From Ruditapes philippinarum (lineage: Eukaryota): a DNA stretch of 64,000 bases. Positions 18,984-63,396 of this stretch are shown one piece after another. The stretch lies in contig NW_026859652.1 of assembly GCF_026571515.1 (NCBI RefSeq), positions 1-64,000 of the forward strand, read 5' to 3'. Below the pieces are notes generated by a model. It worked only from the letters and a program-made list of their open reading frames with translations, made no database searches and was not told where the DNA came from. Within the stretch, counting starts at the first letter, position 1, and every line of letters begins with the position of its first letter. The position numbers were made by a program, and so were the translations under genes.

Positions 18984-20747
18984 TCATATTTTCCCTGGCA
19001 CTTTGAATATTTTAAGGACATTGTCAACTTTGAAATCCCCACTATGACAGCTATAGTATAGCTTCCTTGTTTTACTACAAAAACATACAGCAAATGGATA
19101 TTTCAGATCCTTCCGCACAACTTCTCCTGCTGAACAATCTCCTGACATCTCTTCTATAACATTTCTCACTCCATCACTCACAAAGACCGTACCATCATCC
19201 GACAGTGAAATTCCTTTAGGGTCATCCATACTAGTATTGTTTGCAATCTCTTCATACTGCCAATTTAATATTGTTACTGTTTTCATTTTCCAGTCAGATA
19301 CATATATAAACTGATTGTTTGTTGTGATATATAAGGGGGACCTGAATAGTTCGTTTTCAATGGTGTTCAGTACAGTCCCATTTCTCTGAAAGATTTGGAC
19401 TTTCACGGGATTATTGAATGAAACAACAAGTTTACGTTGATAACAACTGATTCCACGACAATCTCCATCAACCTTCAACTGCCGCTTCTTTAATAGTGTG
19501 TTTGTTGAGATTGATAGAAACTGTATCACTTGTTTATGAGGAAGGGTAACAGCAAGTTCTATATTGGTAACTGCGGTGATATCCCATGGTTCAACATCTA
19601 GTTGTAGTTGAACAGACACAGATTGGCTGCTAGTATCTACCACCTTTACAGCACTGTTTAAGAAGTCAGTGATGATAAGAAGTTCGGGAGTCAGCAGAGT
19701 CATCCCGGTAATCCAGCAGCTAAATTTGTCTTGTGAAGTTTTCACACATATATCTCCATTTTCTTTGCCAGGAAATTGATTTGACTCTATTTGTGATGCT
19801 GGTGCTGTACATTCTGTGTTTAGAGCTGTCAGTGCTAATCTTCCAAGGAAAGTTTCTTGTTTGAGCAATGTGAATATCGTTTCATTGGGTTTAAAGTTAT
19901 ACTCCTTGATATCAAAGTTCGATAAATCTGCAAAAGTTTTATCATACTCTTTTAGCATTTGCTCTGCACACTTTAGTTCAATGAAAAGTTCGTCTGCTTG
20001 TTTTGATATGTTATATTGTTTGATTTTGTCAGCTGATTTCTGAATACTGCTGGTGGTTTCATTACAAGCTGTTTCTATTTTGTTAAGATTTTTGAAATTT
20101 TCACGCAGTGTTTCATGTGCTCTTCTTTCTGCTTGCACCTCAAGCTCATCTAGCCTTTGATTGATTTCTTTACGGAATTCTTTTATGTCTAATAAAACAT
20201 GATTCAAAGAACTGTTTGATTTCATAAATGCTTTATCCGCATGATCTTTAAGTTCGCGATATTGAATTGAAATAGCAGTCATGGTTTTCAATATTTCTCG
20301 ATATTCTATGCCGTCGATGGTATTCTTAGAAATGCTGGGTATGTAATTGACTCTGCAATAAGTAGGTTGATGTTCAAGAGTAACACAAACACTGCATAAA
20401 AGTGTTTTATGGTCTTCACAAAAATATTTGATAGTTTCCTTTTTGTGCTGAGGACAAGATTTAGTATAATAATCATGTTGCCGAAAACGAACAGTTGAAG
20501 GACGTGGCATTGTATGTGGCATGTTGGTTTTGTTCAGTAGTTTGTGATCTCTAGAAAGAGTATGTTTCTTATGGAATTTGTAACACGACTTACATAAGTG
20601 CTCATGACAATTCTTGCAGAAGCCATGAGCGGCCAATCTCTCGCCATCTCTGTCACAGGGCAGGCAAAATACTTTAAGACCGTCACCAGAACTCTTTAAT
20701 GTTGGTGATTTGAAATGCATACCAGCCTTCCTCCCGGAAACAGCCAT
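18984..20747 (-). CDS. RING-less TRIM-like protein 1: B-box1, B-box2, coiled coil, C-terminal NHL-like beta-propeller (587 aa, single coding exon)
   Basis: B-box1 CLPC..FCKNCHEHLCKSC..H..H; B-box2 CPQH..YFCEDH..LCSVC..H; helical central region; propeller repeats (ITD..VKVVD, PWDIT, CRGIS, PLYIT, PKGIS, PFAVC). Acceptor 'ttctag' lies 7 nt before the ATG. Confidence 0.92.
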   Translation of the reverse strand: MAVSGRKAGMHFKSPTLKSSGDGLKVFCLPCDRDGERLAAHGFCKNCHEHLCKSCYKFHKKHTLSRDHKLLNKTNMPHTMPRPSTVRFRQHDYYTKSCPQHKKETIKYFCEDHKTLLCSVCVTLEHQPTYCRVNYIPSISKNTIDGIEYREILKTMTAISIQYRELKDHADKAFMKSNSSLNHVLLDIKEFRKEINQRLDELEVQAERRAHETLRENFKNLNKIETACNETTSSIQKSADKIKQYNISKQADELFIELKCAEQMLKEYDKTFADLSNFDIKEYNFKPNETIFTLLKQETFLGRLALTALNTECTAPASQIESNQFPGKENGDICVKTSQDKFSCWITGMTLLTPELLIITDFLNSAVKVVDTSSQSVSVQLQLDVEPWDITAVTNIELAVTLPHKQVIQFLSISTNTLLKKRQLKVDGDCRGISCYQRKLVVSFNNPVKVQIFQRNGTVLNTIENELFRSPLYITTNNQFIYVSDWKMKTVTILNWQYEEIANNTSMDDPKGISLSDDGTVFVSDGVRNVIEEMSGDCSAGEVVRKDLKYPFAVCFCSKTRKLYYSCHSGDFKVDNVLKIFKVPGKI

Positions 20748-27212: not shown

Positions 27213-29003
27213 TCAACAGAGTTGTTTTTGTTTTATACTCTCTGTCACCTTAGTCATTTTAACGACATTGTCATCTTTGTCATATCCAGTAAAGGAACTG
27301 TTGTACAACGTCCTTGTTTTTCCACACCAAGACACAGCATATGGTTCCTGCCGATCCTTCAATACAATTCTTCCCGTGGAGCAATCTCCTGATATCTCTT
27401 CTATAACGTTTCTCTTCTCATCACACACAAATACTGTGCCATCATCCGTCAGTGATATTCCCTTAGGCGCTTCCATATCACTGTTATTTCCATAGCTACC
27501 AATCGAACAACCCTGCCAATTAAATATTGTTACTGTTTTCATTTCCCAGTCAGATACATAGATAAACCGACTATTTGCTGTGATGTATAATGGAGACCTG
27601 ACTTGTTCATCTTCAAAGATTTTCAATACAGTCCCGTTTATATCAAGAATCTGTAATTTCGCAGGATTGGTGAACGAAACAATAAGTTTATCTTGAAAAC
27701 AACTTATACCACGACATTCTCCATCAACCTTCATCTTTTGCTTCCTATTTAGTTTGTTTGATAAAATTGATACAAACTGAATTGATTGTTCGTACGGAAG
27801 GGTGACAGTAAGTTCCAAACTGTTGACTGTGGTAATATCACGTGGTGAAGTTTCTAGTTGTAGTTGATTTGTCACAGATTGACTTACAATATCCAACATT
27901 TTTACAGACTTGTTGTTGTAGTCAGTGATGATAAGAAGATCTGGAGTAAGGAGAGCCATTCCTGTTATCCAGCATCTTTTTCTATCTTGTGTTGTTATCA
28001 CACTGAAGTCGCCCTTGCAAACAAACTGCCTAGACGATTTGAGCTGCGAGGCTGCTGATGTGCATTTTGTTTTGGTTGTTGGTTTCTCTAATAATGTACC
28101 TAATGATGTTTGTCTTGTGAGAAAAGTTGATATTGTTTCATCCGGTGTGAAGTTGTACTGCTTGATGTCAAAGTTGACTAAATCTGCAAGCGTTTTCTTA
28201 TAATCTTTAAGCATCTGTTCTGCGTTTTTTATTTCAAAGAAAAGTACATCTGCTGTCTGTGATGCGTTTAGTTGTTTGAATGTATCGGTTGTTGTCTGAA
28301 AAACGTTGATGGCATCATCACAAGCTGTTTCTACTTTGTTTAGATTTTCAGTATTTTCATGGAGCATGTCGTTGGCTGTACTCTCTGCTTGTATTTCCAG
28401 TTCATCTAGCCTTTGATTGATTTCTTTTCGAAAGTCTTTTATGTCTTTTAACACAATACTTAAAGAATTGTTGGATTTTGAAATTGCTTTTTTCACATGA
28501 TTTTTAATTTTATGAAATTGATTTGAAATTGTATCCATGGTTTTCAAGATTTCTGAATACTCCTTTCCGTTAATGACATTTGTAGAAATGTCTGGTATAT
28601 AGCTGACTTCGCAAGAAGTAGGTTGATGTCCAAGAGTAACACAAACACTGCAAAGTAGTGCATTATGGTCTTGGCAGAAGAATTTAACGACTTCCCTCTT
28701 ATGTTCAGAGCAAGGTTTCGTAAGGTTATCAGGCTTTTTAGCATCAATTGAAGAATGCTGTAAGATCTTTGGCATGTTGGTTTTGTTTTGAAGTATGTGA
28801 TCTCGGGAAAGAGTGTGCTTTTTGTGAAAGTTGAAACAGGGCTCACATAAGTGTTCACAGCAATTCTTGCAAAAACCATGAGCAGGCAATCTTGGTCCAT
28901 CTCTGTCACATGGCTGGCAGTAAACCTTAAGTTCTTCATCAGAATCCTTAATTTGTTGTGATGCTGTAAGTTTCTGACCAGCCTTTTTTCCTGGAACAGC
29001 CAT
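27213..29003 (-). CDS. RING-less TRIM-like protein 2: B-box1, B-box2, coiled coil, beta-propeller (~596 aa from MAVPG)
   Basis: Colinear paralogue of gene 1. The true start is probably the ATG at 29003, because acceptor 'ttttag' lies 7 nt upstream as in genes 1 and 3. Confidence 0.92.
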   Translation of the reverse strand: MAVPGKKAGQKLTASQQIKDSDEELKVYCQPCDRDGPRLPAHGFCKNCCEHLCEPCFNFHKKHTLSRDHILQNKTNMPKILQHSSIDAKKPDNLTKPCSEHKREVVKFFCQDHNALLCSVCVTLGHQPTSCEVSYIPDISTNVINGKEYSEILKTMDTISNQFHKIKNHVKKAISKSNNSLSIVLKDIKDFRKEINQRLDELEIQAESTANDMLHENTENLNKVETACDDAINVFQTTTDTFKQLNASQTADVLFFEIKNAEQMLKDYKKTLADLVNFDIKQYNFTPDETISTFLTRQTSLGTLLEKPTTKTKCTSAASQLKSSRQFVCKGDFSVITTQDRKRCWITGMALLTPDLLIITDYNNKSVKMLDIVSQSVTNQLQLETSPRDITTVNSLELTVTLPYEQSIQFVSILSNKLNRKQKMKVDGECRGISCFQDKLIVSFTNPAKLQILDINGTVLKIFEDEQVRSPLYITANSRFIYVSDWEMKTVTIFNWQGCSIGSYGNNSDMEAPKGISLTDDGTVFVCDEKRNVIEEISGDCSTGRIVLKDRQEPYAVSWCGKTRTLYNSSFTGYDKDDNVVKMTKVTESIKQKQLC

Positions 29004-32000
29004 CTCAATACTAAAATAGAGGAACAAGAGTGATCAATCAGTAAATTACGGTAAGAATTATTTCACAAGTGCTTAAGTCGATTTTGTATTAATTATTATT
29101 AGTTAACTTTTACACTTCTGATTTATATAAAGCAAATGCAAATGTTACTCTGTATACTTTTTATAGAACAAATTTACAATTTTGATAACTGATTGATTCT
29201 TTACAGTATCAACTTTAAGACAAATCTTTCAGAAAATACCGGTATTCAAATTTTACCTAATATTATAATATAGCAAAATATAAATATATTAAGCATCGCA
29301 GGCTTTTAGATCTAAACATTGCTAGACATGGGTAATATTGTATCAACGAGAAAGTCTCGCATTAATGGACTTTATTCAACTTAATTCTCAGCCCGGTGAT
29401 GTTAAGGTGAAACTATTCTTCCAAAGTCATTAAAAGTACAATAAATGTGTAAAGAAATCTAATCTATTTAAACTCTAATCTATCGTTTTTATATTACTCA
29501 GTAACCTTACATTTTGTGTGGATTTCTTTTGTTACATGTGTAATTTTATTTTTACAAAAGTATAAAACGTTCACGTTCATGCTTATCATGGCTTATATGC
29601 TCTACAGCTTCTAAAAATTATCTGTGAAGGTCAAACATTTATTGGAAATATGATTTTTTTTGCATGTAATCGAAATATATTGAACACAGTTAACACTAGT
29701 GCAATATATTAATGTGTGGCGCTGTGACGCAGCTGGAAAAAGGAAGAAAGCTAAATTTATCATTACCATTACACTGTAAGATTAATCAAAAATCAATTAC
29801 TTCAAAGCATGTAATAGATTTGAAATAAACGACCGGAATTTTTATCAGTAAATTGAAAAAAGATTTGAATACATGTAATCAATGTAAGTCGTAAACAGCT
29901 GCAAAACCTATATCAGACGTCGCTAGCGCCTCGTCCAGTACAGATTTTACAGCTATTTTCTCGTCCAATAGAATTCAGTATTGTACTAAACAATTTATAA
30001 TAACCTCATTATATTAAAGTTATATGATGTGAATAAAAAAAGTACCTGGTGTAATTTTATCCTACCTTGTGATTAGCAGATGAATACTTACGTGCAGTGA
30101 TTAAGATGCTTGAGTTTTTGTTAGTGTAACATGTTACGTGACATACATGATCAATCTAGATGATAATATATCTGATAACTGTTGGCAATGTTGACCTAAG
30201 AGTGAATAAATTGGGGGGGGGGGGGGAGTTAACGTTCCGTGTACATTTAACATATACCATGCCCATCGTTTGATAAAGTACTTTTATGACGGGGCGGAAA
30301 TTTATTGAAAACTAAGTAATTAATATTGAATTTGTAACAGAATGTTCACATTATGCATAGGAAGCTGCATTCCAAATAACTGTTGAAGTAGTCGATTCTT
30401 AAAATAAAACGACCATTATTTTTAATCACACTGTATTCATACTGTTCTTACTTATAGTGTGTAGAGTTTTAAACAAGACATTTCTAGTCTGTATGTAATT
30501 TATCATGTTATTTTACAATAACATAGAGACGATGTAGCAATTATCAATATATTTAAGAATCAAAAGAGCATAATATATCTTAAACTGCATTGTAATATTG
30601 TTATACAGAACAAGACAATATAGAGATCTTAGGCATATGATATAAACAAATTTCTTAACAACTTCAACATTTATTTTGCAAAGTTTTCAAAACATGTTCG
30701 TGAAGTTCGCCAGACAGCCGGAGCAACCATAACATTTATTATAAAAAAAATAGCATTCATAGAGAAGCTACAACAGAAATCGACTGTCATAAAAGGTTGT
30801 TTTTTGTCATGTTTTTAACGTTATCGAGAGATTTTATAGGATTTGAAATAAGGTCTTTTAACACCATCTTTAGAAAAAAGCTTCCACACTTTGGATAATA
30901 GGGACTCATACTGAGGTTCTGTGACATGATGGGAATGGAAATTTTTCTCCGAGCTATCTAAACCAATTGATGTAGGACTTGATCAATAAATTATGCACAA
31001 AGTCTCATCCCGACTGACTAATGAAGCTACAACTTAAAGGAATGAATAGACAAATGTTTAAATATCTAACACTAGTTAGATTTCATGTTTTATAACAGGA
31101 TAGCGTCTTATTGTTAAGGGCAAACAAAATAAAGAAGAAATACCGACAATTGTTAAAAATGTTAGAGAAAAGACATCATGAGGCACTGTGCTGTGCTGTA
31201 ACATGCACTCATAGTTATACACACTTCTTCGTGATCTGTTAAAGTTGACATCCCTCAGGAGCAAAATAAACAAACTTAAAAGAATAAAACATCTCACACG
31301 TACCCTACCACCGACTTAAGCTGTGTTATTTTTTATACATAGTAGAGTATTGCAATAAATTGTCCCGACGGACCAAAACACTTCTTTGGATTATTCTCGG
31401 ACATGTTTTGTAAATGTAATGCCTTTAAGTGAATTGGTCTATTATGTATGGTGTGTAGTACAATAAATAATTATGCTGATATTGTTTTGTATTAGACATA
31501 ATAACAAACCATGAAAGAATTTTGTTGGATGCTGTTGCAAGTGAGAATCTAATATTATGTTTATTTATATAGTAAATAAAATTGTTCAAGAACAATGTAT
31601 TATTATTTATCATGTAAATGTTCATACTATATAACTTAGAACTTTATAGACAAGCAGTAGTTTTTAAAAATGTTCAAATTTTACAATTTCTATTGATTCT
31701 ATCAATTTATAAAATACTAACGGAAATGTGCCTATTTTAGTTTAATATAAATGTGCCTACTTTACTTTAAATTTGAGATCGACTTCGCCACTAATAACGT
31801 AAATGTCACCATTGCAGCAATATTTCATCACTAGCGCCGGTAATACGGTGAGTTAAACACTATGCCGAAAAGAGACATGCCTTTATGTATAGATTGACAT
31901 CTCTAAAACCCTAAACTAATTTACGTTTTAGATTTCGAAACAAAATAATGCAGACGAATTATTCTTTTGATCAAATAAAATCATGATTACTAGTATTCAA

Positions 32001-34820: not shown

Positions 34821-36227
34821 TCAATCAAAAATGAAATGTCCATCTTCAAATGATTGCAATATTGTGCCATTTATATCAAGAATCTGCAGTTTTGCTGGAC
34901 TACAAAATGACACAACCAATTTATTTTGATAACAACTAATGCCAAGACAGTCTCCATTTACCTTTATAATAGATTTTTGTGTGAGTTTTTTTTTAAGGAT
35001 TGATACAATCTGTATTGTTTGTTTGAATGGAAGTGTGACAGCAAGTTTCGTGTTGCTCACTCTGGTAACATCATGTGGTATAGTATCTAGTTGTAATTGA
35101 TCAGTAACCATTTGGCTGTTAATATCAACCATCTTTACAGCTTTATTTTCACAGTCAGTTATGATAAGAAGATCGGGATTAGTAAGAGTTATTCCGCTTA
35201 TCCAACATTCATATTTATCTTCTGATGTCTTTACACGGATTTCTCCTTGGCAAGAAAATTGTCCAGACTTTATAGGTAAAGGTTCTGTAGATTCTGTTTT
35301 GAGTGGTGCCTTTACTAATGTACCAAGTGACTTTTCTTTTGTGAGCAACGTTGAAACTGCTTCATTAGGTGTAAAGTAATACTCCTTAAAACAAATGTTG
35401 GCTAAATCTGAAAGTTCTTCCCCATACTTCCTTATCGTTTGATTTGCGTACTTAAGTTCCATGAAAAGTTCATCTGCTTGCTTTGATGTGTTAAATTGTT
35501 TAATATTATCAGATGATGTCTGAAGAATGTTAGTAGCACCATTGCAAGCTGTTTCTACTGTGCTGAAGTTTTCGGAACTTTCTTGTTGAATGTTATTTGC
35601 TGCAAGTTCTGTTTGCATCTCAAGCTCATCTAATCGTTTGTTTATTTCTTTACGGAATTTCTTGATGCCCACTAATACATTCTCCAAAGAACTCTTCGAT
35701 CTTGAAAATGCGTTATCCGCACGATGTTTTATTTCATGATATTGAAGTGAAATAGCGTCCATGGTTTTCAAGATTTCTTGGTACTCTTTGCTATCAATGA
35801 CATTTTCAGAAATATCAGGTATGTAGCTAATTTTGCAGGTTGTAGGTTGATGTTCAAGAGTAACACAAACACTGCATAAAAACGCGTTATGAATATCACA
35901 GAAGTACTTGATTGATTCTTTTTTGTGCTTCGGACAGGGTTTCATAAGATTATCATGCCCACTATAATGAGCAGTTGAAGAAGGTTGTATGGTTTGTGGC
36001 ATGATTGTTTTGTCTAGCAGAAAGTGATCTCGAGAAAGTGTATGTTTTCTATGGAAGTTGAAACATGACTCACATAAGTGTTCACAACAATTCTTACAGT
36101 AGCCATGGGCAGATAATGTAATTCCATCTTTGTCACAAGGCTGGCAATAAACTTTAAGAGTGTCATCAGAATATTTTGATGTTAATGTTGTAAACTGCTG
36201 ACCGACCTTCTTTCCTGGAACAGCCAT
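34821..36227 (-). CDS. RING-less TRIM-like protein 3, C-terminally truncated by an internal deletion plus frameshift (468 aa from MAVPG); possibly a young pseudogene
   Basis: Colinear with genes 1 and 2 up to ILQSFED, then GHFIFD*. In another frame, 34822-34778 encodes DPNVDNVIQIYKLT*, the paralogous C-terminus, so about 100 codons are missing. Confidence 0.8.
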   Translation of the reverse strand: MAVPGKKVGQQFTTLTSKYSDDTLKVYCQPCDKDGITLSAHGYCKNCCEHLCESCFNFHRKHTLSRDHFLLDKTIMPQTIQPSSTAHYSGHDNLMKPCPKHKKESIKYFCDIHNAFLCSVCVTLEHQPTTCKISYIPDISENVIDSKEYQEILKTMDAISLQYHEIKHRADNAFSRSKSSLENVLVGIKKFRKEINKRLDELEMQTELAANNIQQESSENFSTVETACNGATNILQTSSDNIKQFNTSKQADELFMELKYANQTIRKYGEELSDLANICFKEYYFTPNEAVSTLLTKEKSLGTLVKAPLKTESTEPLPIKSGQFSCQGEIRVKTSEDKYECWISGITLTNPDLLIITDCENKAVKMVDINSQMVTDQLQLDTIPHDVTRVSNTKLAVTLPFKQTIQIVSILKKKLTQKSIIKVNGDCLGISCYQNKLVVSFCSPAKLQILDINGTILQSFEDGHFIFD

Positions 36228-38614
36228 TGCAATACTAGAATGATTGCTTCTAATTGTTTCAATTACATTGTATTTGTCAGCAATAACTACAGTGAATGCA
36301 TTTAACATTGAAATGAAAATATACTGCAAAATAAAAAATTGTGTGATGATGTGTTACAATCAATTTTAATACAATAACTTTCGTTGTGATCATTTTTGCA
36401 TTCTTTTCCTTACATACAATCAAATTAGCTTATATTTAAAATAAACTCATAAAAATCAAGATTTAAATAACCACATACAGCTCCTATTTCTTTAAACACA
36501 AATTAACACTTAACGTTCCTGTGTAAAATTTTAAGCAATAATTTAAACATATCCTTTGTCGATGACAAACGGGCGTTTTGATTACATCTAAACAAAACCA
36601 ACAATTTAGTAAATATCACGAGAAGTTAGGTCACTGAGATACAATAAATGTTACTATAGTACGATATAGACGATATAATCATCTCAGTCAATTCGATATT
36701 TGTAAAAACAGTACAGAGCTACATTACGTTCCAAAATGCACCCGGATATGAAAACGCTAACAAAATGGCGATGAGCACCTTTTTTATCATAAGAATATTT
36801 AACTTTATGTATGATCTCAACAATACGCGCTACTTATAATTGCACAATACTTCAGAGATTGTACGTATTTTTACACGAGTCCTGTGACCTACACGTCTAA
36901 TCATATTGGTGTAGCATTAATCAACTTCAGTTTAACACAATAAACGATATGTTAAACTTTTAAGCGACAGTAAAAGTGTCGAGTGAATAAAATGACAAAA
37001 CAGTCGTCAGAAAACTACTCTCTGAACTGTAGTCTAAAAACTGGCTATATTAACTGATTTTATCAGAAACTGCAGTTTCAATAGGAAATTCAGTGTTTAT
37101 TAAAAGCAAAGAATGTAATGTTTACAAGAATACAAAAGCGAAGGGAAAATTCTAACAAATCTTTCATGTATTGAAATGCCAAAGAGAGTCACATTTAACG
37201 CTTTGAAACATTTCAGCGATTATATTTGCTATATGCAATTAGCAATTATTTCACCATGCAGTTCTATCGGATTTGTTGAATGGTGAATAAATTTACGATC
37301 GCAATTCAAAGATGTTCGTATGTCTGTTGTAAGATTGTTGTCTGTCTAAATTTGCACTTTCATCATGCAGAGTCATGAACGAGTGACGTTGAGAGAATTT
37401 GACATGTGCATGGTAACATCGTTGCCGTCGTTTGTGTGTATTAACCTATTGGGTTATGTACACAAGACTTTGCATGACATTTTGTAATAAATTTGTCCAT
37501 ACATATACCGCTTTTCGTTGTTGGGTTATTCCTTCAAATCAATAACAAAACCTTTGAATCACCTCTAGTAAATTTTACTGATGGTTCTTTAAATGAACAG
37601 TCCAGTATGAAGATAAAGATTGAAAACAAAATGTCGAAAATAAAAAATAACGTTATTTAATGTCGTTTTTTAATAATACGTGACTAACATTGAATAAGAT
37701 TTAGGGCTCTAATGTTAAAACATTCCAAATAGCAAAATATGTTTAAAAACATTTAATAATTGTACATTAGGCTTCGAACATTAAGAGTACTTCACTTCGT
37801 AGTAAAACTACCTTTTATAAAACAGATCCTTTTTTTACGGAAATCGGTTCAGAGATGCAAAATTCTGGAAGTAACTAAAAACTCATAAATATTTCTTAAA
37901 TACGAATTAAATTAGTTCAGAATGATTTATATATCTCTGCTACAAACAGATCGTAGTTTTTGCTGTTGGTTTAACGTTAATATTTTCTCAAATTAAGCTA
38001 CTGCCTGCTAACACAGTCTAATTATCTTGACCACTTTGATATGGGAAAAATCCTGTCTGTCTGAAGTGAACAGCCATGCAGATTTGGAACATATCATTGA
38101 ACATCACAAGGAAAACCAAAAGATTTGTAAGTATGTCGATAAATATGCAAAATGGACTTGCCAGTCTTTGTCAGTTATTAATTTATAACAAGTGATAGAT
38201 GAAGTCAAATGAACAAAATCTGTATCGTTTCTATTTGGATTAGATCTTTATCGTTGTTGTTTTTTTAACTTAAGTTTTTACATTTTTGCCCCAGAGTGAG
38301 ATATGTAGCTGGATTATGTCACGTTATATAAATTTTGATGTTGAAATAATGAGATAAGTTATAAAAAGTTAAATCTATTTTGGTTGATATCAAATGTTTT
38401 GGTCTTCAAGTTTCAAACTGAACATGTAACCCAACACAGTCAGTTTTCCCCTATTTTTGTTGATTAAATATGAATTTAATGCCATTGAATAATAAATTAA
38501 AATTTAAGTTTCTATTCTTAGTAATGACTAAATGAAAAGGTATGTACTTTGTAAACAAAATTGTTTAGGCTTCTATTTATTTTTATCGGAAAATATTTGG
38601 AATTTACACGAAGT

Positions 38615-51410: not shown

Positions 51411-54400
51411 TTAAGAGCTTTGGCTCTTTTTTCTTTTACACTCGCCCCATTTTAATTTTTGTCTGTTTTGTTTCAGCACTTCATTGACATCTCCCTGTAA
51501 CTGTAGCGTCTTCTTCAAAACTTTCCCATTATGAATTTCATGATTAAGTTTTGATTCTAAGTCTCTCACTTTCTCCAGAGATTTTCTTAGCTCCGGATTT
51601 AAATTGTCTTTTGTAATATCTTTTATCTCTGTATTGCTTTTAAGAATGACCTGATTATCATCGTATGTGCTGTTGCAAGACTCCAGGTTTTTGTCTAACA
51701 GTTTCTTCAGTTTCCCCCTGCTCTCTTTTTCGCAATGCATTTTTATTTGTAAAAAATAGAATTTGTTTTTGGGCTAAAATTTTTTACTTTGGGGTTTTTC
51801 AACTGCTACAGCTTGGGGGGAAAACCCGACCAACCCGTTGCAAAAATTTTTCATCGTCTTTCCCTTTTTCCCCTAAAACATTTTAAAAAGGGGTTTTGAG
51901 TAATAAACGCAGCTTTTGCTTTTTTTCTTTCCCCCTTTTTAAATGTCCTGCAATCAGTCAAAAAGGTTTTTTAAGCGTTTTTAAAAATTTTCAAACCCAA
52001 AAACTACAAAAAAAAAGTAAAAATTTATAAAAAGCCAAAAAAGTTTGGGCATTTAAAGGTTTTGGGGCTATTTTTAACTTTTACTAAAAAAAAACAGTTT
52101 AATCCTGTAGCTTCTGTCAGTCTATTTTGTTCATCACGCGATCCTAAGACTTTTTCAATGTTTGTTGGAAGACTTTTACTTCTATTTACATCGCCATCAG
52201 CTTTTGTTGTTTGACTCATGTTCATTGTTGGAAGTGGCAATTTCTCTCGATTTGCCAGAGCAAGTTCTAAAATGATTAAACTTTTCATTAAATTAAATAC
52301 ATATGACCTACATTTAACTTTAAAATTTCGACAGTTATTTGATAAAAGATATGAAAATATGTTTGCGGAACCTTTAACTAAACATTGTCCTAAAACAAAC
52401 AAAATATGGTCAAACACATATATCGGTAGCATAAATGTACTCTAATAATACTCTAAATACTCTAGATAATTCATTAGAACATTAGAAGATTTATCCACTT
52501 AAAATGCCTCTCAAAGCAAATATCAAACTGGTTACTCTGAACCTTCTTGAAAAAAAAATTGATTTCCCTCGTGTAAAAATATTTTTAAGCGTATTAAAAA
52601 AACCATTTAACATCCCACAGTTTAATATCTCCCCCAAAAAATCTATTCTTATGAACTTTAAGAAAATTCTTTGATAATAAAAAGTGTTTACTTTTCCTTT
52701 GATTCTTGCATATGACACCGATATGGGTTTGAAGAACAGGGGCTGAAGAAATTTTCAGAGGTTTTCGTCGGCTATTTAATTTGGGTCTCCTGAAAAATTT
52801 GAATCTGTTCTTTCTTTTTCTAATTGTTGGCTTTGTCTTTGACCTCATGCATCTCTTCTGATCTATAAAAACAAAATCGTTAAACAATCACATATGAAAA
52901 GTATCATCGCCTTAGCACAATGGTTCACTACTTGGATCTACCTCTTCAACGAAAATTATTTACAATGTACAATTAAAACTTGCGTGCAAAAGAAACAGTT
53001 AGTTCTCCCATAGAGTAATTTCTACTTGTGTTGCAAAATTCTCTAAAACATTAAAAACACTTGCTCTGTTCTTCAGTTCATCTCTCATATAAGCCATGTA
53101 TGCTACTTACAATTGAATAATGAAATGTGAAAAGGTAACTCTATCAAGGGGAAACAACGTTCATTGTCGTAGCCCCGCTTTCTACAAAAAATATAACCAT
53201 TAGTCAGTATAAATATACATGTTATTCTTGAAATACTTATTAATTGCCCACCCCGAAATTTATTTGAATTTTGTTTCTTCAAAAGGGCTTTTTTATGTGA
53301 CTTATATTTTGGTGTTTTGGAATTTTCAAAATACTACAGTACTTTGTTAACATTTTTTATGATTAAAATAATTTTGCATTCAGTGCTATTTTCTTTAGAT
53401 AATCAGCAGGTAACATGCTATGAAAGCAGTATTAAACATTATAACATTCACATTTTAAGACTCAATTAAACCTAGTCAACAATTGTCATGTTATCTTGTT
53501 ATTGTTATTGTTTCCGAGGGATCACTTTTCCTCCAGATTTTTTTATGCTTTCCTTTTCTAAAGAAGAAAAAAATGTATCCGTTTATGAGGCATAATGTTC
53601 CTTTAACTAGAACAAATCAGATCGGATTTCATTTTAACCTTTATCCAATTTAGATTCTTCCTCAAAAATATTCTCCTCTCCCCCTACACATTCCCCTTCT
53701 TCGTTCTCCTTTTTCTTCTTCTGTTAAGAGTCATCCTAAACTAAATTTTAAGGTAGAAAATATCTTTTTGGCTTCATTCTGGTTCTAAAAAATTATTTAA
53801 TGTGGCTTTTAACATTTAACTTTCCAGTTACAAAAGATTAACTGATAATTCGAAATTCAAAAAATAATTTTCACATAACAATTAATAACATATTTTATCT
53901 ATCTATCAAATATGATATTTAAATATAAATTTAACCGTTCTTCGCGGGTTTAGATATTGCCGGTATGATACGGACATTTTGGACTCTGGAAATGAAAACA
54001 AGGCTATGTTGGCTTTGATATGGATTGTATATGAATAATTTGCTCTCGGGAAATGAAAACGACGTCACTGGGGGTTCGATGTGAGCCTTTTGTGCTGAAA
54101 ATAATAAATAGGCTAAAATGATAAGATTTGATCCAACAATTATATATTGAAACAACGCGTGGTACAAATGCTGAAAGTAAATTTTATTTCATTTCATAAG
54201 ATGTGAAAATTATAATTTTATACTCTTTATGTGTGCATATTACAATTAACCTGGATGAAATATTTTTACATGACAAAGACACCTTTACCCGAATAATCTG
54301 CCGATGTTTCAGAAGGTTTTGAAGGTATTGATTTAGGAGTGCCAGACTTGTCCGTTCCAGATTGCTGAACTTTACTGCAGGTTTGTAGCGACTTTGTCGT

Positions 54401-57400
54401 GCCTTCGCTGTAACTGATTCGTTTTCTGGGAGAGGGAACTGGTGGTTTATTCAGTATTTTAACTGAAAGAAATATGTTTTCATACAAGATTAAGTGCCTT
54501 CATTATAACGTTTTGAAATACACTGACTTTATAGAATTGATACAATAAAAATAATAAATTCATTTCAAAATGCACAAGGAAAATGAAAATTTGTAAAATT
54601 AAGGCAGAATATGGTTATAAGATAATATGAAAAGAATTACACAAACATGGTTATAAGAGAATATGAAAAGAAGTACACAGTCAGCTATATAAAAAGAATT
54701 ACACAATGAACATCTGTGACACCGAAATCACTCGACAATAATAGTCAGATAAAAGCTAGAAGCCGATTTAATTATCAGTTTTAGGACAGTTTATTTAAAC
54801 AAGAATATTCGTGGAATTATATCTCACCTTTGTTTGAATGCAAAGGTGTATGGTCGGGAAAATAACACCTTGTTGGTTCTGGGGTGGTCAATTTTATTAC
54901 TTCGACGCTGTTTGTATCGCTTGAATTGTCTTTGATATCTTTGATATCTATTTCAAGCGAATTTCCTACTTTCAAGCTATTTATATCTGCATAATACAAG
55001 ATTAAGCAATTATATCAGGTATTAATAACTAGAAGCTTAGAGAGGCAATAAGTTACAATAGTAAACAAAACAGACAGCACACTATTATGTTATTGAATGA
55101 ACAGTTTTAGCTGGAAAATATTAAGTGCTCAAATTATTTTAAAATTGTTTCCATTTTGGGTTTAATGTGTACAGAAATATTATGCAGAATATAATGACAA
55201 TGTACTGCTCTAATGTTTGAATTACATGTTCATCACATACATGTAATTCTAACATGCGTAGTATTAATAATTTTAACATAAGCAACATAAAAATATCACA
55301 TCCAACTGAGGGTGATGATATAGAAAGTTAACCTAGGCGTCGAAGAATCTCGTTCTTCGATTCACCCTCAGTGAAATGTGATATTTATTTTTATATCGAA
55401 AAAGTGCCTCTAGCGTCTAAGCGAGGGAGCTTACTAATACGAAACAAAATACCGAAAACATGTCATACGATATGCCCGTGAAGGCAGTTTGGTAATGATA
55501 GCAGGCCATAAGATGAAATTTACAACTAGTACCTTTTGTTAACTAAACGAATTAATAAATGTCAGAATGACAAAATTCCCTGTCTTTTGGAGAGAAATAC
55601 AGAGTTATTACCTGTTTTAGAATACTGCTTATTCCACCTCCTTTGTGGAATTTGTGGTGGTTCACTGATAGACATACTATCTTCTGATGTCATGTCAGTC
55701 AGTGACCTGTATTCTCCGCTCAAATCTCTAGGCTGATATTCCTCATACCGTTCTGTTTCTTCAATCTCAAATGAATGTTTAGAAAAGTTGTCAAAATTTA
55801 CTATTTCCGGTTTGTTTTCAGGTTTGCGCATTTTCATATACAATTCGTCTATTTCGTCCCTTCCATTGTCGCTATACTCTTTGGAGCAATCGAAATTCTT
55901 ATAGCGTTCAGTAAAATGTAGCTTATTACTTTGGTGATCTTCCATCATTTCTAAGTAGTCATTTGTTCTCAAAGTTGTTGAAATTTCCTTTCTGCAAATA
56001 TACTCATTGTCGTCGATATTGTCGTCAGTGTCTGAACATTTCTGTACTTTTTCACCTGTAGTAAAATATGTTGACAATGAAAGATGAGACATTTTTACTT
56101 TTAACCATTTCTTGAACACAATAATTATGAAATTAAGAATGTAAAATTCAACAAAGAAAGAAAATGCAATTCCAGCAGCTGGCTCCCTCAACCAGATTAA
56201 TAAAACAAGCAAATTGGATGTTAAAATAGCCAATCGTAATTGTTAACTTTGATAACGGAATGTGTTCTGCTGACCTTCAGAATCAAGTATCTCTGGTATT
56301 GCCAGCAAATCTGCAGCTTCGTACCGTCCAGCGTTTGTAAGTGCATCAACGAAATGAGAGTACCAAAATTCGTGTCGCCTTGGGACCATATCAAGTAATT
56401 TATCTGTCGCGGCTAGAGAACCAAACATCCGTTCTGTTTGTATAATTTCTTCTTTATCTTCTGAGGAAATGACGTTATAAGCCCAGAGTATTTGCACCAC
56501 CTCTTGTGGTACAATTAACTCACGAAGAACAGGTGTTATTATTTTCAAATATTGTCTTTGGTATGTATGGTCAACAGGCTCTTCTCCTCTTAAAGTGTCG
56601 ACAATGCATTTATATCCTGCAAACACATATAGATGTAAATGTATACAATTATACATTTACACACAGACAATCTAGAAAAATTAAATCGTTCGAGATCTAT
56701 GAATATGGAAATTACAGACTGTTCATGGGCAATTGTAAAAGTTGGAATCACCGGTGCCTCTAGCATAGACTTAACTAGCATTCATTCTTCAATCCTATCA
56801 ATTTTTGAATAAATGACCAGAAGAAAACAAGATTATTTATACAGTTCACATCGATAAAAAACAAGTATCGTGTAAATGATAAACATATATCTGTTTGTGG
56901 TAATGATATGATGGCAGACTCAATCATTCGAGTGTTTTAATTATTATATTATGTTGGTTTTAATATGTTTTATTCAGAAATTTAAAAATGAATAAATTAG
57001 CAACATTAAGGAAACTGAAAAGAAAGCCTTATAAAAAAGCACCATCTACATTTATTCATATCAGTTCTTATTGTCAGTGGTGGTTCAATTAAGTAAATTA
57101 CAGTAGTTTAGAATATTAAATTAAAAAATATATATTCGTAATTATTAGAAAATTATTTTTAAAACACTTAGAACTAGATCAAAAAGAAAATTTAGAAAGA
57201 TGAAATGGATTGAAGAACTTCATATGTGATTGTCAGACATACAACTAACATTTTTATCATTTTATATTATGTTGAGTTGCAGGTGAGTTACAGTAACATT
57301 TTTTCTTCATCTAAGCGTACATTTTCTATAGAAAGCTAAACGACACCAACATTTGCTGTTAGTAATCAGGCAATATGAAAAATACCTGATCATCAGTTTT

Positions 57401-59149
57401 AATAATAAACTTGACATTATACTATATCATGGCATTGTTATAAGGCATAGTGATTTAGTCTCAAGATCATTGGGCATAATATGAATTAAGTCTGAAATTG
57501 GAATTACCACATGCTTCCAATGCTTGCATGAATTGTCTCCAGCGTCCAGGCTCTGTGTTGCTTCCTGAACATAACTCATCAATGAGGTATATTATAGCAG
57601 CATGTGGATCTCTTTCTTCAATGGCACGGATTTTACATTCAACATTGTCTGAAAATAGAGACAGTTATTATTGATCTATTGACAAATATAAAAATGCCAT
57701 GAGTTTTAGTGTTAAAAATAAATAAACAACAAAGAGCAAAAATGAATATTAATTCTTGAACATGTCATTGTTTTATAAGCATTCAAACATATGAAATACT
57801 TGAAAATTCTGCGATATTGAATTTGGCTGCAAAGCACTTTGAGCGAGTACGAGATATTATTGATATATGTATATTCCATTAAATTGCACCAAAAACTCGA
57901 ATTATGACCTCAGGAATTTCAAACAAATAACATAACTTAGTTCTATTGTTTTTTTGTTTTTTTCAATATGAAATGGTTTCCACAATGAAAACATACTGTC
58001 TTACAGATCTCTTTCTTCTATCAGATTACAGCATTATAGTGATAAACTGTAAATGATTTTTTTTTTCAATTTTTACTTTAAGTAAAAGAAGAATTTGTAC
58101 TATGTGCTTACACAAAAATGGTAAATGAGGTAGCAGTCTCTTCACGTTGACGTTTTTAACAATGAGTGGCTTGAATATCTTGACCATCTGTTCATAATTA
58201 GCTCGGCGTTTAGGAAACCCATGATAAACATTAGCATGATCATTCTGAAATTAATAATAAACTAAGAATAGTAATTATAAGACATATACACAAGAATAAC
58301 ATAGGTTTAAAATATCAAATCACAAGAATCTGGACGTAAAATCATCATGTTATCTTGAAATTCAAATAAAGCCTGACTCTCTCAGTTAAAATAAACTTTT
58401 TTCAACATACATTTTTATGAACTGACATTGGTTGTTTCTGTTCCGTGTCTGACAGGTCCATCTCGAGATCTAAAAAGGAAATAACGTCATGAATATCCTG
58501 TGTGCAATAGGCTTTGAATTAAAGTTTACACAAACACATCGATTGCCCATTTAGTTAAATGTATGTGCACTGTGCAAGCTTAACATTTGTCAATAAAAAA
58601 AATGCTGTTATATAATATACATGTATTTGTTGTGTATTTTAAACGTTCCAGGAAGTTTTGTGGTTTAACTCAGTCGCTATTTGAAATTCTGCTACAGGTA
58701 ATATAATACAGGTGGTTTACAGAGGTTAGTTGTTGCACCCGCGACTTGATATAATGCTCATGCTAGGAAAGCCACATTCGACAAAACAATTGAGTCATTT
58801 AAAACTTAATTAAAAGACTATAACATAATGCAAAATAAAACTAACCATTAATCACGTCATAATGATCTGGTTGCTCGGGAGTCTTTGGTTTTGTTTCATC
58901 TTGAATATTTTCGGGGTTAACGGGCAATTTTGGTAATGTCTCTTGTAAAACAGTTTCATGATAGAAAAATTGACCGGAATCATATCCACATGCATCATCA
59001 TCCACACCATATGTTGTTCCCGTACTCTCATTGACTCTTGGAAGCCACACGTCAAGATCGGGATTACGTATTTCCCCGTTGTTTTCATCCGGTTCACCTT
59101 GCAAATGGTATGTAGGATCATGCATCGGATCATCTTGATTTATGGGTAA
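51411..59149 (-). CDS. Multi-exon gene: acidic N-terminus, RIG-I/MDA5-type tandem CARDs, disordered Tyr/Pro-motif region, coiled coil. Confident exons: 59149-58846, 58469-58411, 58244-58112, 57648-57508, 56616-56275, 56055-55612, 54986-54828, 54462-54283, 54094-53936. Further exons at ~53735-51411 lie in error-rich sequence and the 3' end is uncertain
   Basis: All nine exons have AG/GT ends and compatible phases. CARD1: YEQMVKIFKPLIVKNVNVKRLLPHLPFL...AAIIYLIDEL...EPGRWRQFMQALEACGY. CARD2: YQRQYLKIITPVLRELIVPQEVVQIL...DKEEIIQTERMFGSLAATDKLLDMV...WYSHFVDALTNAGRYEAADLL. A coiled-coil-like ORF lies at 51411-51740. Confidence 0.85.
55291..55386. repeat. Intronic hairpin element
   Basis: 'aaatatcacat..actgagggtga' and 'tcaccctcagt..atgtgatattt' are inverted arms. 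Confidence 0.6.
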
Positions 59150-62100
59150 CTGAGGATGTTATTAAGCACATGTTAAATGTTATGATAATGAGTGAGTCAA
59201 GATAAATCGATAAGTCTAAACCAGTATTTAATTATAATCGGCAAAATTAAAGCTTCTGGCAAACAAACGGTTATTGATGTTTTTAGAAAAAAATACATTC
59301 TAAATGATAAACTTTATTTCACAAATGAATACTGTGGAATTATACATATTCCATTACATTTGTTTGTAAAACGATGTTGATTTTTTTTCTCTCATTTTTT
59401 TCTTTTGTTTTTGTTTCTTATGTTTTTTATGTTTTGTGTTCTACTGAAATAAACACGCAAAACTGTTGTTAAAAAGGGATTTTCCCGTTTTCAAAATCCA
59501 TTTAGGGCAACATAGAAAATCACATGATCCGAATAAGATAATAAATTTTCTCTTCAGCAGAAAAGGAAGAAATGAATGATAACAAGCATTAATACGGTAA
59601 AAGATAAATACGTTTAGAAAACAAAATATGCTTAGTAATGTCAAAAACAAATTACTCATTAACAATGATGACAAAGCTGTGTTATCAAATTATAAATTGA
59701 CAAATAACGCAAATTCAAATATTAAGCTAGTTCATACAAAAAGTACTAATGTAAAAAAAGAAAGTAATTAACTAACCAAATAAAACAATGAAAAGACAAA
59801 AAATAACGACAAAATATATATAAAGACAACAAAAATGAGAGTTGCGGAAATTTCAAAACGAAGTGACTTCAAGCGAAAAGCTCGAGAAAGCGTCACATAA
59901 CAATAAAAAAGAAAAATAACTGTTGAAAACCATAATACTGTCCTACTAAAAATATTAAATGAACCAACATGAATTCAAAAACATATACATACAGGTCCAA
60001 AGCTTCCTAAAATATAATTCAATCAACAAAAATGTATCTGCCTTAATAATCGACAAGTAAACATTTTAGTAACATACTTCTTTATTGTGTTGTATCGGAT
60101 AATGGTCTCTAACCATAAGTTATTATATCATTGCTTACGGATCAAATTTTATAAGATCGATGTTTACAAATATGGTTTAAAATCATTGCTGGTAAAAGTG
60201 TCAAAACATTTTTATGCTGGTATTTCTGGCAGAAACATATGTATTATTCTCTAGTTTTATGTAGATAGTATTAACCCGTGCTGTTTTCAACTTTTGATGA
60301 CAGATGCTTTTAGAAACCTCCAGTCACTGTTTGCGGAGAGTACCTTCAAGTCACTTTTGATTACATAATATCAACGTCTGTTTTAAAAATGAATGGAATG
60401 ACAACACAGACAGACTCGGTGCGTAATTTTGATTTTCGAAATATAAGATCAAATATGAGATAAGGGAGCTATCCAGCTAGCTAACGGAGATCTTATTTAT
60501 TCAGATCCATTCTGCACCTGATAAATAAACCTGTTTTGAACAACGTGTTCTTATCTGTTACGCACGTTAAATATTTTTCGCATGACGGATTAAGAGTCAT
60601 ATCTCAAATGATACAAATTCTTTCTTTATATCGTTTATGTCAACAAGAGGTAGTAATTCAGCTAAAATTGATGAATTTCACGCTTTTCAGATTTTATGAT
60701 ATCTTTAAGTAAACACTATCGTTTTTTAAAAAAAATCGTCGTGGTCGTGAATAAACTAAACTGCATTATTTCTGCTTGTACTTCCTGTTAAACAATAAGA
60801 GTTCAATAAATGACTCATTCAAGTACAGACTCTAGTACTTTGATAGGCAAGTATACCGACATCTAGCAACTTAAAAAATCATTTAAATCAAACGGTGAAG
60901 TTAAAAAATCAGACAGTTCATATTTTGAGCAAAATTACAAACACTTTTCAGGGCATGTTCAGCATTAATGTAGAGAAGGCACCAAAGGTTAGGAGCTTCC
61001 CTGCCAGACTGAGCACATAGGAAACGGCTGCTAGATATTTACTTTATCATCAGCGATTTTAGGGGACTCGAAAAACCAAGTAACGATCACTGGACCAATC
61101 AAGATGACGAACAACTTCATCTAGGGATTAGACAATGCTTAAAATGTCTCCAATGTATCATTGAACATTCATTACCCGAAGTATCATTATGAGCACTAGA
61201 TGTCATGTAAGTAACCCTAAAGCTCAAAGATGTCTAAGTAAAATTGCTCTCTTGTGTGATCAACCTTGCAAGAAATTTTTCAATATTAGCAATAGATTGA
61301 TGTATATTCTGGGAACTTATTGAATATATCATATTTTATATGACTAATACTTCTTTGGAGAAAATATCGGTTACTATTGATAAAAGTGATATGGTAGTAA
61401 TTGTTACTTACGTCATCAAAATAATTCCACCTGACAGGCTTAAAGTTATCCCTGACCCGGTATCTCTGGAAAAAAGAAATTGGTCATTAAATGTTGATGG
61501 GGTATACATAGTGTCGAACTCGACATAGAAACTTACTCCTACAAAAAAAAACAACCGAGGCAGCCTATTCGTACAGACATAATCCTTCACCATTATTGTA
61601 CATAATTCAATAAAAATATGAAGTTCTGCAACTAACTAAAAAGTCGTCCTCTAAAATACTTCTTTTTTTATACATTTAGAATGTTACACGACAGGGTATC
61701 TCTGCTTATCTCTTACAGTTATATTTCAATTATCGCCTTTCTTGCATAAACGTTTAAAAGAATATTTTTAAAGTCTTCAACTCGTCAACAATTTGCCCGG
61801 GAGTTTTATGTGAAACATAAAAAATAATCAGCCAGATATTTGAGATTTACGATCTTTACAAGCCATATTTACTTTTTAAAACTGTTTCTGCCCAAAGGTT
61901 TTACAAGACTTATAAGATGTTCCAAATATTTGAGATGTCTGTGTATTATTATGCATTTTAAACGTCTATCTTCGTCTTACATGGACAGGACCAGTCAAAC
62001 TTGAAATAACTATTTCTCAAAAAATCTTTCTATTAGGCGTTATCCAAGAGATTTAATAGAAACAGCAAATATTTTTAGTACCAGATATATGAATTTCAAT

Positions 62101-63396
62101 ATGCCGGTAAATATAATACTGCTCTGATCTTCAGACTTCAAAATGTAAGTTACTAAATTTAGAACGTCTTCGTCACACGAATTTTGGTAGTCCATATTTT
62201 TAATGGCGATATCATGTACCATTTCAGCATTGATAATAAACCCTTTGCATAATTCTCTGTCTGCTTAACTTGCCTTGTTTGAAGAATTAATGGCTCAACC
62301 GATTTATAAGATGTCTTGTTCCAGACAACAAAAACGGTTCCTCCTAAGGGTCAAAGATGAATATAAAAATCAATATGATAACCAATATGAAGTAACAAAA
62401 AATTAGGTCAAATCTAAAATTTATATGATTGATTGGAAGTGATATTCAAACAAAACAAATCTTTGGCAAAAAGCAAAGCATTATAATTAACATTAACCTT
62501 TCTCATGTGGAAAATGGTTTTTGAAAACACAGTGATGAATATGGTACTTATTTATGACAAAAAACTATATCGTTTTAGAATTACAGTACCCGTAGTCGGA
62601 AAGTACGTTGATTTAAACATAATTCGTTTTAAACATTACCTTATTATCATGCTTCGATATTTTACCACCCATGATAAAAAAAACTTTAAAACAATCCAAA
62701 ATGTGTGTTATGTCACAATGTCTAATTCATCCATTTAACTGATTGAAATAGGAAGTTATAAAAAATATTATATAGGGTGTATTTTGGTTAAAAAAGGGTT
62801 TTTCCAATGAGTTCATACACTCACGGGTAGAATGTTTACATATGATAATGATAGTCTATTTCACAATAACTTTTTCGGTAAGGGTCACGTCCTTAATGAT
62901 ATGACATCTCAGCTATATGGAACGTTACAATCATATAGTTTGTAAGAAAAGCTGTTAATACCTGTAATACCTTTTTAAAAGTCACTCCATTTCAATGTGA
63001 AAAATAAACAATGAAAAAGACTATAAACTCAAATATCATATTTCAAAATGTTTAAGTCGCTTTGTTATATTTAGCCTACTATATGCTACGTCATGTATTC
63101 TATAAATGCTACGTTCATAGATGTCGTTATAGTTACGTCAACTAAATTGTACAGTATTTCTTAATATATTTTATCAACTTGCTTGGGTTTTTTTTACATT
63201 TTTTTAATTTATATTTTTTCGTGAGAAGTATTTAAATGGTAATAGATGTTTTATTTTTAGAAACATCGACCAATAAATATTGTTTTGTTTTATTAGGACA
63301 AAGACAAAGATTATCGAGCATTAGGGTACATTTTTATACTAGAACTCACGCCACTTGAGCAACTTAATTCTCAAAAAGTTTAATTACACTTATTAA

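Follow-up and report, generated by a model that had tools for sequence, protein, structure and literature searches.

A stretch of 64,000 nucleotides from the bivalve Ruditapes philippinarum (assembly GCF_026571515.1, contig NW_026859652.1, positions 1 to 64,000; hereafter the window) raises the question of what is encoded by a gene in which the tandem CARDs of a RIG-I-like receptor (RLR) are followed by a long motif-rich tail instead of a helicase. The gene, LOC132757392, lies on the minus strand and carries the RefSeq label "uncharacterized protein". We show that it is a genuine spliced and expressed gene and not a truncated RLR, and its sequence places it in an uncharacterised bivalve family of helicase-less RLR-type tandem-CARD proteins. 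We further consider it reasonably probable that LOC132757392 encodes an intact-looking, lipid-anchored signalling scaffold of the RLR pathway, belonging to a bivalve helicase-less 2CARD family. Judged from the sequence, the architecture would be a new variant built on the known 2CARD module, with a putative function.

A preliminary description of the locus had proposed that three exons encode two adjacent RLR-type CARDs, and every sequence string quoted in it was found on the minus strand. The exons in question (58112-58244, 57507-57648, and 56273-56615) are joined by RNA splicing and match the Pfam family CARD_2 (PF16739), which comprises the CARDs of RIG-I, MDA5, and MAVS. By itself, exon 56273-56615 reaches 51.8 bits (E 8e-14) with CARD_2 versus 27.7 bits with the generic CARD family, and the whole 621-aa RefSeq protein XP_060604647.1 (isoform X2, here P0001) contains two CARD_2 stretches (78 bits). 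When this single protein was searched against the sequences of the PDB, only the 2CARDs of MDA5 (7DNI) and RIG-I (4P4H, 4NQK) matched, each spanning both CARDs, and the HMMER alignment to the human RIG-I 2CARD 4P4H reproduces the parallel at the CARD junction exactly as it had been described. A profile of 31 family members matched the RIG-I/MDA5 2CARD with E values of 2e-16 to 6e-15, whereas CARD11 (1e-3), the MAVS CARD (0.011), Apaf-1 (0.02 or weaker), and ICEBERG (0.87) followed far behind. The two adjacent CARDs are of the RLR type, not of the MAVS, caspase, or NLR type.

The predicted structure points in the same direction. In an AlphaFold2 model computed with the family alignment, residues ~165-352 are folded with a predicted local distance difference test score (pLDDT) above 90, and the remaining residues of P0001 stay below 50-60. 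The best Foldseek matches of the model are 4P4H_A, with a TM score of 0.83 and a root mean square deviation of 2.4 Å over 189 columns, and 7DNI_A, with a TM score of 0.81, whereas single CARDs including that of MAVS reached only E >0.03 (MAVS CARD, E 0.39 or weaker). According to the model, the RIG-I/MDA5-like 2CARD (residues ~165-352) would be the sole folded part of the protein besides a helical segment near its C-terminus.

P0001 was identified by a phmmer search with exon 56273-56615 against 1.84 billion representative proteins; it is 100% identical to the query and maps exon-for-exon onto the window. The gene spans approximately 50.9-62.7 kb and is larger than the region to which the tandem-CARD protein was initially assigned (55612-58244), which corresponds to exons 5-8 only, out of at least 15 exons. 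The initial span leaves outside the exon with the KPPVPSPR motif (54289-54462) and misses the N-terminus, approximately 150 residues that begin with MGGKISK (62640-62672). RefSeq isoforms are 604-657 aa long; X1 and X3 use an alternative first exon (62070-62222), and X3 also skips exon 9 (54828-54986).

RNA contigs from three public runs (three studies) and one raw RNA run, which was sampled at 12% and gave 2 reads only, were placed on positions 53400-59300. The contigs contain the joints 58846|58469, 58411|58244, 58112|57648, 57507|56615, 56273|56053, 55612|54986, and 54828|54462, as well as 55612|54462, which represents the variant skipping exon 9. Every intron has canonical GT..AG borders, contigs of three runs contain the splice joints of ten exons, and all three CARD exon junctions are supported by spliced contigs from three independent runs. 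LOC132757392 is therefore transcribed and spliced, since the run contigs lack the introns. In 14 small runs from approximately 10 studies, the fraction of sampled words present was 0.24-0.36, close to what the exons alone would contribute. Contigs also extend past 59149 into exon 61412-61465 and past 54289 into downstream exons, where loose contig ends match ~53783 and 52862. Exons were not joined by hand; family scans were run per exon, and whole-protein work was done with database proteins (P0001 and relatives). The coding segments of the gene are as follows.

62640..62672, minus strand: first coding exon of isoform X2, read from the sequence as MGGKISKHDNK followed by a gtaatg donor; residues 1-11 of P0001.
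62070..62222, minus strand: alternative first coding exon of isoforms X1/X3 (MVHDIAIKNMDYQ...), lacking a myristoylation signal; located by tblastn of P0153/P0152 against the window.
61412..61465, minus strand: exon 2, basic N-terminal continuation (RYRVRDNFKPVRWNYFDD); a loose contig end matches 61412-61441; AG acceptor and GT donor present.
58846..59149, minus strand: exon 3, acidic disordered N-region with the conserved islands PTYxLQGEPD, VWLPR, ETVL, and DHYD(V/L)IN; joint 58469/58846, loose end at 59149; 100% identical to P0001 residues 30-130.
58411..58469, minus strand: exon 4, 59 nt (DLEMDLSDTEQKQPMSVHKN); joints 58244/58411 and 58469/58846 in RNA runs X1 and X2.
58112..58244, minus strand: exon 5, linker and first CARD1 helices; RNA joints, weak CARD_2 match, AlphaFold helices from residue 167.
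57507..57648, minus strand: exon 6, rest of CARD1 (…EPGRWRQFMQALEACG); joints 57648/58112 and 56615/57507.
56273..56615, minus strand: exon 7, last CARD1 helix and complete CARD2; CARD_2 match given above, RNA joints.
55612..56053, minus strand: exon 8, disordered tail with YLEM, LYMKM, DNEYI, EYRSL, and PPQIPQR; joints 56053/56273 and 54986/55612; pLDDT <50.
54828..54986, minus strand: exon 9, a cassette exon that X3 and one RNA contig lack, with the conserved island VEV(I/V)KL..PE...C.FP(D/E)HT; joints 54462/54828 and 54462/55612, mapping of P0152.
54289..54462, minus strand: exon 10, with conserved KILNKPPVPSPRKR and including KPPVPSPR; RNA contigs splice onward from 54289.
53639..53783, minus strand: probable exon 11, corresponding by homology to residues ~565-620 of Mercenaria; supported by a joint at 53702 and by loose contig ends at 54289 and 53639; frames compared by eye with P0151.
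52692..52862, minus strand: exon 12, polybasic/aromatic patch (…IRKRKNRFKFFRRPKLNSRRKPLK…); the sequence from 52862 onward recurs in an RNA loose end before 53639; tblastn match to P0151 residues 622-680.
52103..52261, minus strand: exon homologous to Mercenaria residues 685-736 (…KSLPTN.EKVL…), found by tblastn; homopolymer-noisy from here downstream.
51459..51683, minus strand: helical segment ("coiled coil"), sharing 64% identity with P0151 from Mercenaria (tblastn E 5e-22).
50860..50950 (approximate), minus strand: candidate last coding stretch (…FSVYGKDQKLKLRKDSVLFQN and stop, compared with …AVYIARKELQLENIDKDSAFYSKFTTKL and stop in the orthologue), from a minus-strand motif scan in noisy sequence.

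Exon 8 has a single genomic match, and no paralogues of it were detected in the clam genome.

The preliminary description had noted the lack of Walker A and DExH motifs downstream of the CARDs, and our RLR and Pfam searches indeed revealed neither a helicase nor a RIG-I C-terminal domain there. Seven full-length RLRs compared with the 64-kb window matched at the CARD exon only (E up to 0.1), and none of the 18 genome hits for PF11648, the RIG-I C-terminal domain, is located on contig NW_026859652.1, the start of which lies within the window, downstream of LOC132757392. Pfam likewise reported no helicase and no PF11648 in P0001, P0153, or the 979-aa Mercenaria orthologue P0151. The latter and a 1047-aa relative from Mactra (P0004) contain two CARD_2 each and no other Pfam domain, so that the RLR search, the PF11648 scan, and the domains of the orthologues all fail to extend the full transcript into a helicase or C-terminal domain. 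No Pfam domains were found in the tails and downstream exons, a Death domain was absent from P0001 and P0151 according to Pfam, and an ESM Atlas search with the C-terminal half of the orthologue returned a lead with a score of 0.75 only, which is not meaningful. The helicase-less RLR-type protein with a long disordered, motif-rich tail that had been proposed is thus supported by RNA splicing, profile, and structure model.

Transmembrane segments were not found in P0001, P0153, P0151, or P0004, for which the top 19-residue Kyte-Doolittle means (1.25-1.27) fall within CARD helices. A MAVS orthologue with a C-terminal transmembrane anchor was considered on account of a hydrophobic open reading frame (ORF) at 53931-54167 (minus strand, FQYIIVGSNLIILAYLLF). 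This candidate was rejected: the ORF is intronic, just downstream of exon 10, is covered by unspliced low-depth contigs only, and is not joined to the gene by any splice.

The nearest relatives of LOC132757392 (E 1e-68 to ~1e-5) are proteins of 340-1050 aa from Ruditapes, Mercenaria, Mactra, Mya, and the freshwater mussel Potamilus. They are all named "uncharacterized" or "CARD domain-containing", except for one mislabelled as MDA5. This is P0004 (Mactra antiquata), which is deposited in GenBank as "Interferon-induced helicase C domain-containing protein 1" (MDA5); with two CARD_2 and no helicase in Pfam, its name is a mis-annotation by CARD similarity. A Pfam scan of 20 longer relatives found two to four CARD_2 stretches in each; two of them (P0055 and P0036) possess the complete helicase as well as the C-terminal domain and are true RLRs, and no helicase was detected in the other 18. 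One relative, P0012 (890 aa), combines an N-terminal HEPN_DZIP3 domain with four CARD_2 and likewise lacks a helicase. Common to relatives from Mercenaria, Mactra, Mya, and Potamilus are an MGxxxS start, a 2CARD, and a C-terminal DS[AG]-hydrophobic-[YG] motif, together with the absence of a helicase. The N-terminal MGxxx[ST] myristoylation pattern occurs in 15 of 31 relatives versus 1 of 120 other hits, and DS[AG]-hydrophobic-[YG] lies within the last 45 residues of 17 of the 31 (e.g., KDSAFYS in the orthologue, or DSGVGT). The true RLR P0055 has the C-terminus …DREFYSQ, similar to the KDSAFYS-type motif of the helicase-less proteins; such an ending may be common to bivalve RLR-pathway proteins. 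The membership in a sizeable bivalve family had been overlooked previously, as had the myristoylation-type start, the C-terminal DS[AG]-type motif, and a polybasic patch.

Within the clam genome, at least 38 CARD_2 exon hits were obtained, only ~9-11 of which are linked to an RLR C-terminal domain; the resulting number of helicase-less loci is approximate, because some of the "non-RLR" exons have near-identical counterparts among the RLR exons and could be haplotigs of RLR genes. When 37 clam CARD_2 exons were placed in a maximum-likelihood tree, LOC132757392 was sister (93/91) to ten exons of the four-CARD P0009 type without linkage to an RLR, and it stood outside the RLR-linked clades. On contigs C5928, C7562, C14298, and C943, this four-CARD type (P0009, LOC132749761) forms clusters of near-identical CARD_2 exons, which probably represent tandem duplicates and/or haplotigs. 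Word-based homologue searches, started from either the protein or the family alignment, added little, with only four hits each.

On both sides of the 2CARD, the protein contains extended regions with short conserved elements. The MGGKISK start, with Gly2 and Ser6, fits the N-myristoylation consensus (PROSITE PS00008) and leads into the basic sequence RYRVRDNFKPVRW, so that eight Lys/Arg are found among the first 24 residues of isoform X2. The following ~130 residues are acidic and disordered (28 Asp/Glu versus 7 Lys/Arg), and their islands PTYxLQGEPD, VW.PR, ETVL, and DHYD(V/L)IN are also kept in Mercenaria, Mactra, and others. The protein is probably lipid-anchored via this predicted N-myristoylation.

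At the other end, the donor at 54289 is not used in the RefSeq models, whose frame runs on to a stop at 54266, whereas RNA contigs splice onward. The Mercenaria orthologue P0151, which is 45% identical over 89% of P0001, continues for ~400 residues further. Homologues of this extension lie in the window, and for the ORF 51414-51740 there, AlphaFold predicts three long helices (mean pLDDT 82.5); the coiled coil of the preliminary description is retained as a predicted helical segment (51459-51683), although it lies outside the span originally given. The helical segment, followed by KEKExxAL, is conserved across the family alignment. A C-terminal candidate near 50878 reads …RKDSVLFQN and stop, in noisy sequence, versus …NIDKDSAFYSKFTTKL and stop in the orthologue, and the product of LOC132757392 probably ends in such a KDS-type motif. 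Between these elements, the polybasic patch at 52692-52862 (minus strand) with interspersed Phe (IRKRKNRFKFFRRPKLNSRRK) is conserved in Mercenaria (IFKRRKKWRKFQRSKLTSRRK) and resembles a MARCKS-type effector, lipid-binding, or nuclear localization segment.

The tail downstream of the CARDs had been described as a phosphotyrosine and SH3-binding adaptor module, and its motifs fared differently. The two YxxM motifs are a modest excess in the 270-residue tail (2 observed versus 0.30 expected, P = 0.03 by shuffling) and both are conserved in Mercenaria (DYLEM/EYLEM and ELYMKMRKPEN/ALYLHMRLPNN), but tyrosines in general are not specially conserved: as a class they were discarded at 41% conservation versus 36% for all disordered residues. 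DNEYI falls into an alignment gap and is not conserved, and for EYRSL, the tyrosine pairs with a tyrosine in the BLASTP alignment but not in the MAFFT alignment. PPQIPQR, the sole strict PxxPxR motif, is not conserved either. KPPVPSPR is kept as KPPVPSPRK in the four closest relatives and takes the forms PPIPTPR, PPVPTPR, and RPVPLPR in relatives, but it is neither a strict PxxPxR nor a canonical class II SH3 ligand and looks equally like a proline-directed Ser/Thr site. Enrichment of PxxPx[RK] and [ST]P in the tail was not significant. TRAF-binding, LC3-interacting region, and pLxIS readings of the conserved islands were also tried, none of which gave a convincing fit by eye. Because PPQIPQR is unconserved, KPPVPSPRK is non-canonical, and tyrosines barely exceed the average of disordered residues, the phosphotyrosine-adaptor idea appears thinly supported.

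From these elements, the following mode of action can be proposed for a lipid-anchored scaffold. MGGKISK would be N-myristoylated and, with the adjacent basic residues, tether the protein to a membrane. The 2CARD would enter CARD_2 assemblies, i.e., tetramers of activated RLR 2CARDs and/or MAVS-type CARD filaments, by homotypic interaction, with the helical segment aiding oligomerisation. Effectors could be recruited by PTYxLQGEPD, ETVL, DHYDLIN, YLEM, LYxxMRxPxN, KPPVPxPRK, and the polybasic patch. Finally, the C-terminal DS[AG]-hydrophobic-x-[ST/E] would be regulated by phosphorylation, in the manner of beta-TrCP degrons and IKK sites, and would control turnover or docking. The phosphodegron recognised by beta-TrCP, which is also an IKK target, is DSG-hydrophobic-x-S, with a DSAFQE variant in Wee1, and by analogy the C-terminal D-S-[AG] motif suggests signal-dependent turnover or docking. 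Going further, the bivalve family of myristoylated, helicase-free 2CARD proteins could constitute a second, lipid-anchored hub that receives or nucleates CARD_2 assemblies at the plasma membrane or endomembranes independently of mitochondrial MAVS, with its output set by the tail motifs (Tyr-based sites, polybasic patch) and its lifetime by the C-terminal beta-TrCP-type phosphodegron; we put this forward as a speculative extension that is rather unlikely as it stands.

Several other explanations have to be weighed against the scaffold, two of which concern the gene itself. A truncated or mis-modelled RIG-I-like receptor with its helicase exons elsewhere might be suspected from the RLR-type 2CARD and from the MDA5 label of the Mactra relative, but the window, which extends to the contig start beyond the gene, holds no exon for a helicase or C-terminal domain, the transcript splices into non-helicase exons, and the 979- and 1047-aa orthologues carry CARD_2 only, which leaves this explanation with almost no probability. 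A decaying copy, in which the 3' half is a pseudogene and only a truncated 2CARD with a short tail is produced (604-657 aa), possibly without function, would account for one stop and one frameshift of probable exon 11 in the reference, for the frames broken from 52100 to 50860, and for the lower RNA depth downstream of 54289. However, the breaks are mostly changes of homopolymer length in a noisy stretch (inflated homopolymers and broken frames at ~50500-52100), as is typical of unpolished long reads, and the downstream exons are still 43-64% identical to the Mercenaria orthologue. Moreover, RNA contigs splice past 54289, and one of them has an open variant of the first 18 letters of exon 11. 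We thus regard a decaying copy as improbable and the 3' frame breaks as mainly assembly noise; the RefSeq models are probably truncated because the 3' half is frameshifted and noisy in the reference.

The other two explanations accept the protein and differ in its role. In the docking adaptor originally envisaged, phosphorylated YxxM motifs would recruit PI3K p85 and PxxPxR would bind SH3 domains, coupling tyrosine-kinase signalling to MAVS. The excess of YxxM and its conservation in Mercenaria speak for this role, as do the additional conserved Tyr islands PTYxLQGEPD and DHYDLIN and a Src-like N-terminus of myristoyl group plus basic residues, which would put the protein near membrane kinases; since the tyrosines overall are hardly more conserved than the average disordered residue, the PxxPxR candidates are either unconserved or not strict, and more distant relatives, P0005 among them, have no YxxM in their tails, we find this role doubtful. 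The main rival is a decoy or negative regulator, comparable to CARD-only proteins or dominant-negative RLR splice forms, whose 2CARD would cap or sequester the CARD assemblies of RLRs or MAVS at a membrane distant from where signalling takes place and thereby dampen it. The lack of a sensor domain and of any known effector domain, an expanded and fast-diverging family as expected for arms-race regulators, and a degron-like C-terminus befitting a removable brake are all compatible with such a role. On the other hand, a simple cap would not need more than 600 tail residues with motif islands kept between genera, and isolated 2CARDs of vertebrate RIG-I and MDA5 are established to activate signalling rather than inhibit it; a decoy is therefore rather unlikely in our judgement.

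The scaffold that we favour has points against it as well. Its N-myristoylation is a consensus match only, the first exon of X1/X3 lacks the signal, and exon 62640-62672 was not reached by any RNA contig examined. The degron/IKK-site reading is a resemblance to known consensus motifs, and the candidate C-terminal motif reads KDSVLF here, which differs from the family consensus. Since the 3' half is frameshifted and noisy in the reference, the long form is deduced from a few RNA contig ends together with the orthologue from Mercenaria, and given the lower RNA depth past 54289, the short read-through isoform may predominate. RLR 2CARD structures were part of the AlphaFold training, from which the modelled arrangement may be reproduced; in the exon tree, LOC132757392 sits on a long branch, and the node that links it to the helicase-less clade falls short of full support. 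Finally, full-text literature searches found no functional study of such proteins.

For molluscs, a single oyster study documents signalling from RLRs to MAVS, and in some gastropods MAVS was reported missing. In invertebrate antiviral signalling, members of the family described here might serve as the adaptors so far missing, as amplifiers, or as brakes, and the family would show the 2CARD module reused as a portable signalling unit. Furthermore, RLR counts based on CARD hits are inflated, because genes of this kind carry the wrong name MDA5 (Mactra) or remain "uncharacterized" and the RefSeq models of LOC132757392 are probably truncated by assembly errors.

Adjoining the CARD gene in the window is a tandem cluster of three paralogous single-exon ORFs on the minus strand (18984-20747, 27213-29027, and 34821-36329; 587, 604, and 502 aa), which combine a Cys/His-rich N-terminus like B-box/TRIM-type zinc fingers with a helical middle and a repeat-like C-terminal half. 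An ORF of 155 aa (41575-42042, minus strand) lies between this TRIM-like cluster and the CARD gene.

Among known proteins, the closest likeness is to RIG-I (DDX58) and MDA5 (IFIH1), which have N-terminal tandem CARDs, whereas LGP2 does not. The homology extends over both CARDs (E ~2e-16), with TM scores of 0.81-0.83 and assignment to Pfam CARD_2. However, the clam protein lacks the DExD/H helicase, the Hel2i insertion, and the C-terminal RNA-binding domain, and its 2CARD is internal, being preceded by ~165 residues with a lipidation-type start and followed by the long disordered tail. With MAVS, it would share an adaptor logic, i.e., a CARD_2-type domain, a membrane anchor (predicted here), and a long motif-bearing linker. 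In contrast to the single MAVS-type CARD of MAVS, it has two RLR-type CARDs (2e-16 versus 0.011 with MAVS); it also lacks a C-terminal transmembrane anchor, for which an N-terminal myristate would substitute, and a Death domain, whereas oyster CgMAVS consists of CARD, Death, and transmembrane segments (PMC5557890). The clam protein thus appears analogous to MAVS in logic and is not a MAVS homologue.

Within molluscs, two Aplysia genes (LOC101858480 and LOC101846979) were mentioned in passing to encode RIG-I/MAVS-type CARDs without helicase or C-terminal domain, one of them having two CARDs and the label MDA5 (PMC9334734). They resemble LOC132757392 in being helicase-less mollusc genes with one or two such CARDs, and the label recalls the misnamed Mactra relative; the comparison is by description only, and the passing mention covers neither their architecture nor their motifs or function. 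Proteins of this kind are not described in surveys of RLRs in lophotrochozoans and in aquatic animals (PMC8998645, PMC9680064). The CARD-only proteins ICEBERG/CARD18, CARD16, and CARD17 likewise have a CARD without effector or sensor domain, but they are ~90-200 aa long with a single caspase-1-type CARD, whereas the clam protein comprises at least 621 aa (~980 in the orthologue), with RLR-type tandem CARDs and ~430 non-CARD residues with conserved islands.

Lipid-anchored adaptors of other pathways offer a further comparison: TRAM/TICAM2 is a myristoylated adaptor with a TIR domain, FRS2 a myristoylated docking protein with a PTB domain, and MARCKS combines a myristate with a polybasic effector domain. 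None of these is homologous in sequence, the module of the clam protein being an RLR-type 2CARD. The likeness, drawn from general knowledge, lies in the MGxxxS start, nearby basic residues, one small interaction module, and disordered docking regions, and the internal polybasic/aromatic patch of the clam protein recalls the effector domain of MARCKS.

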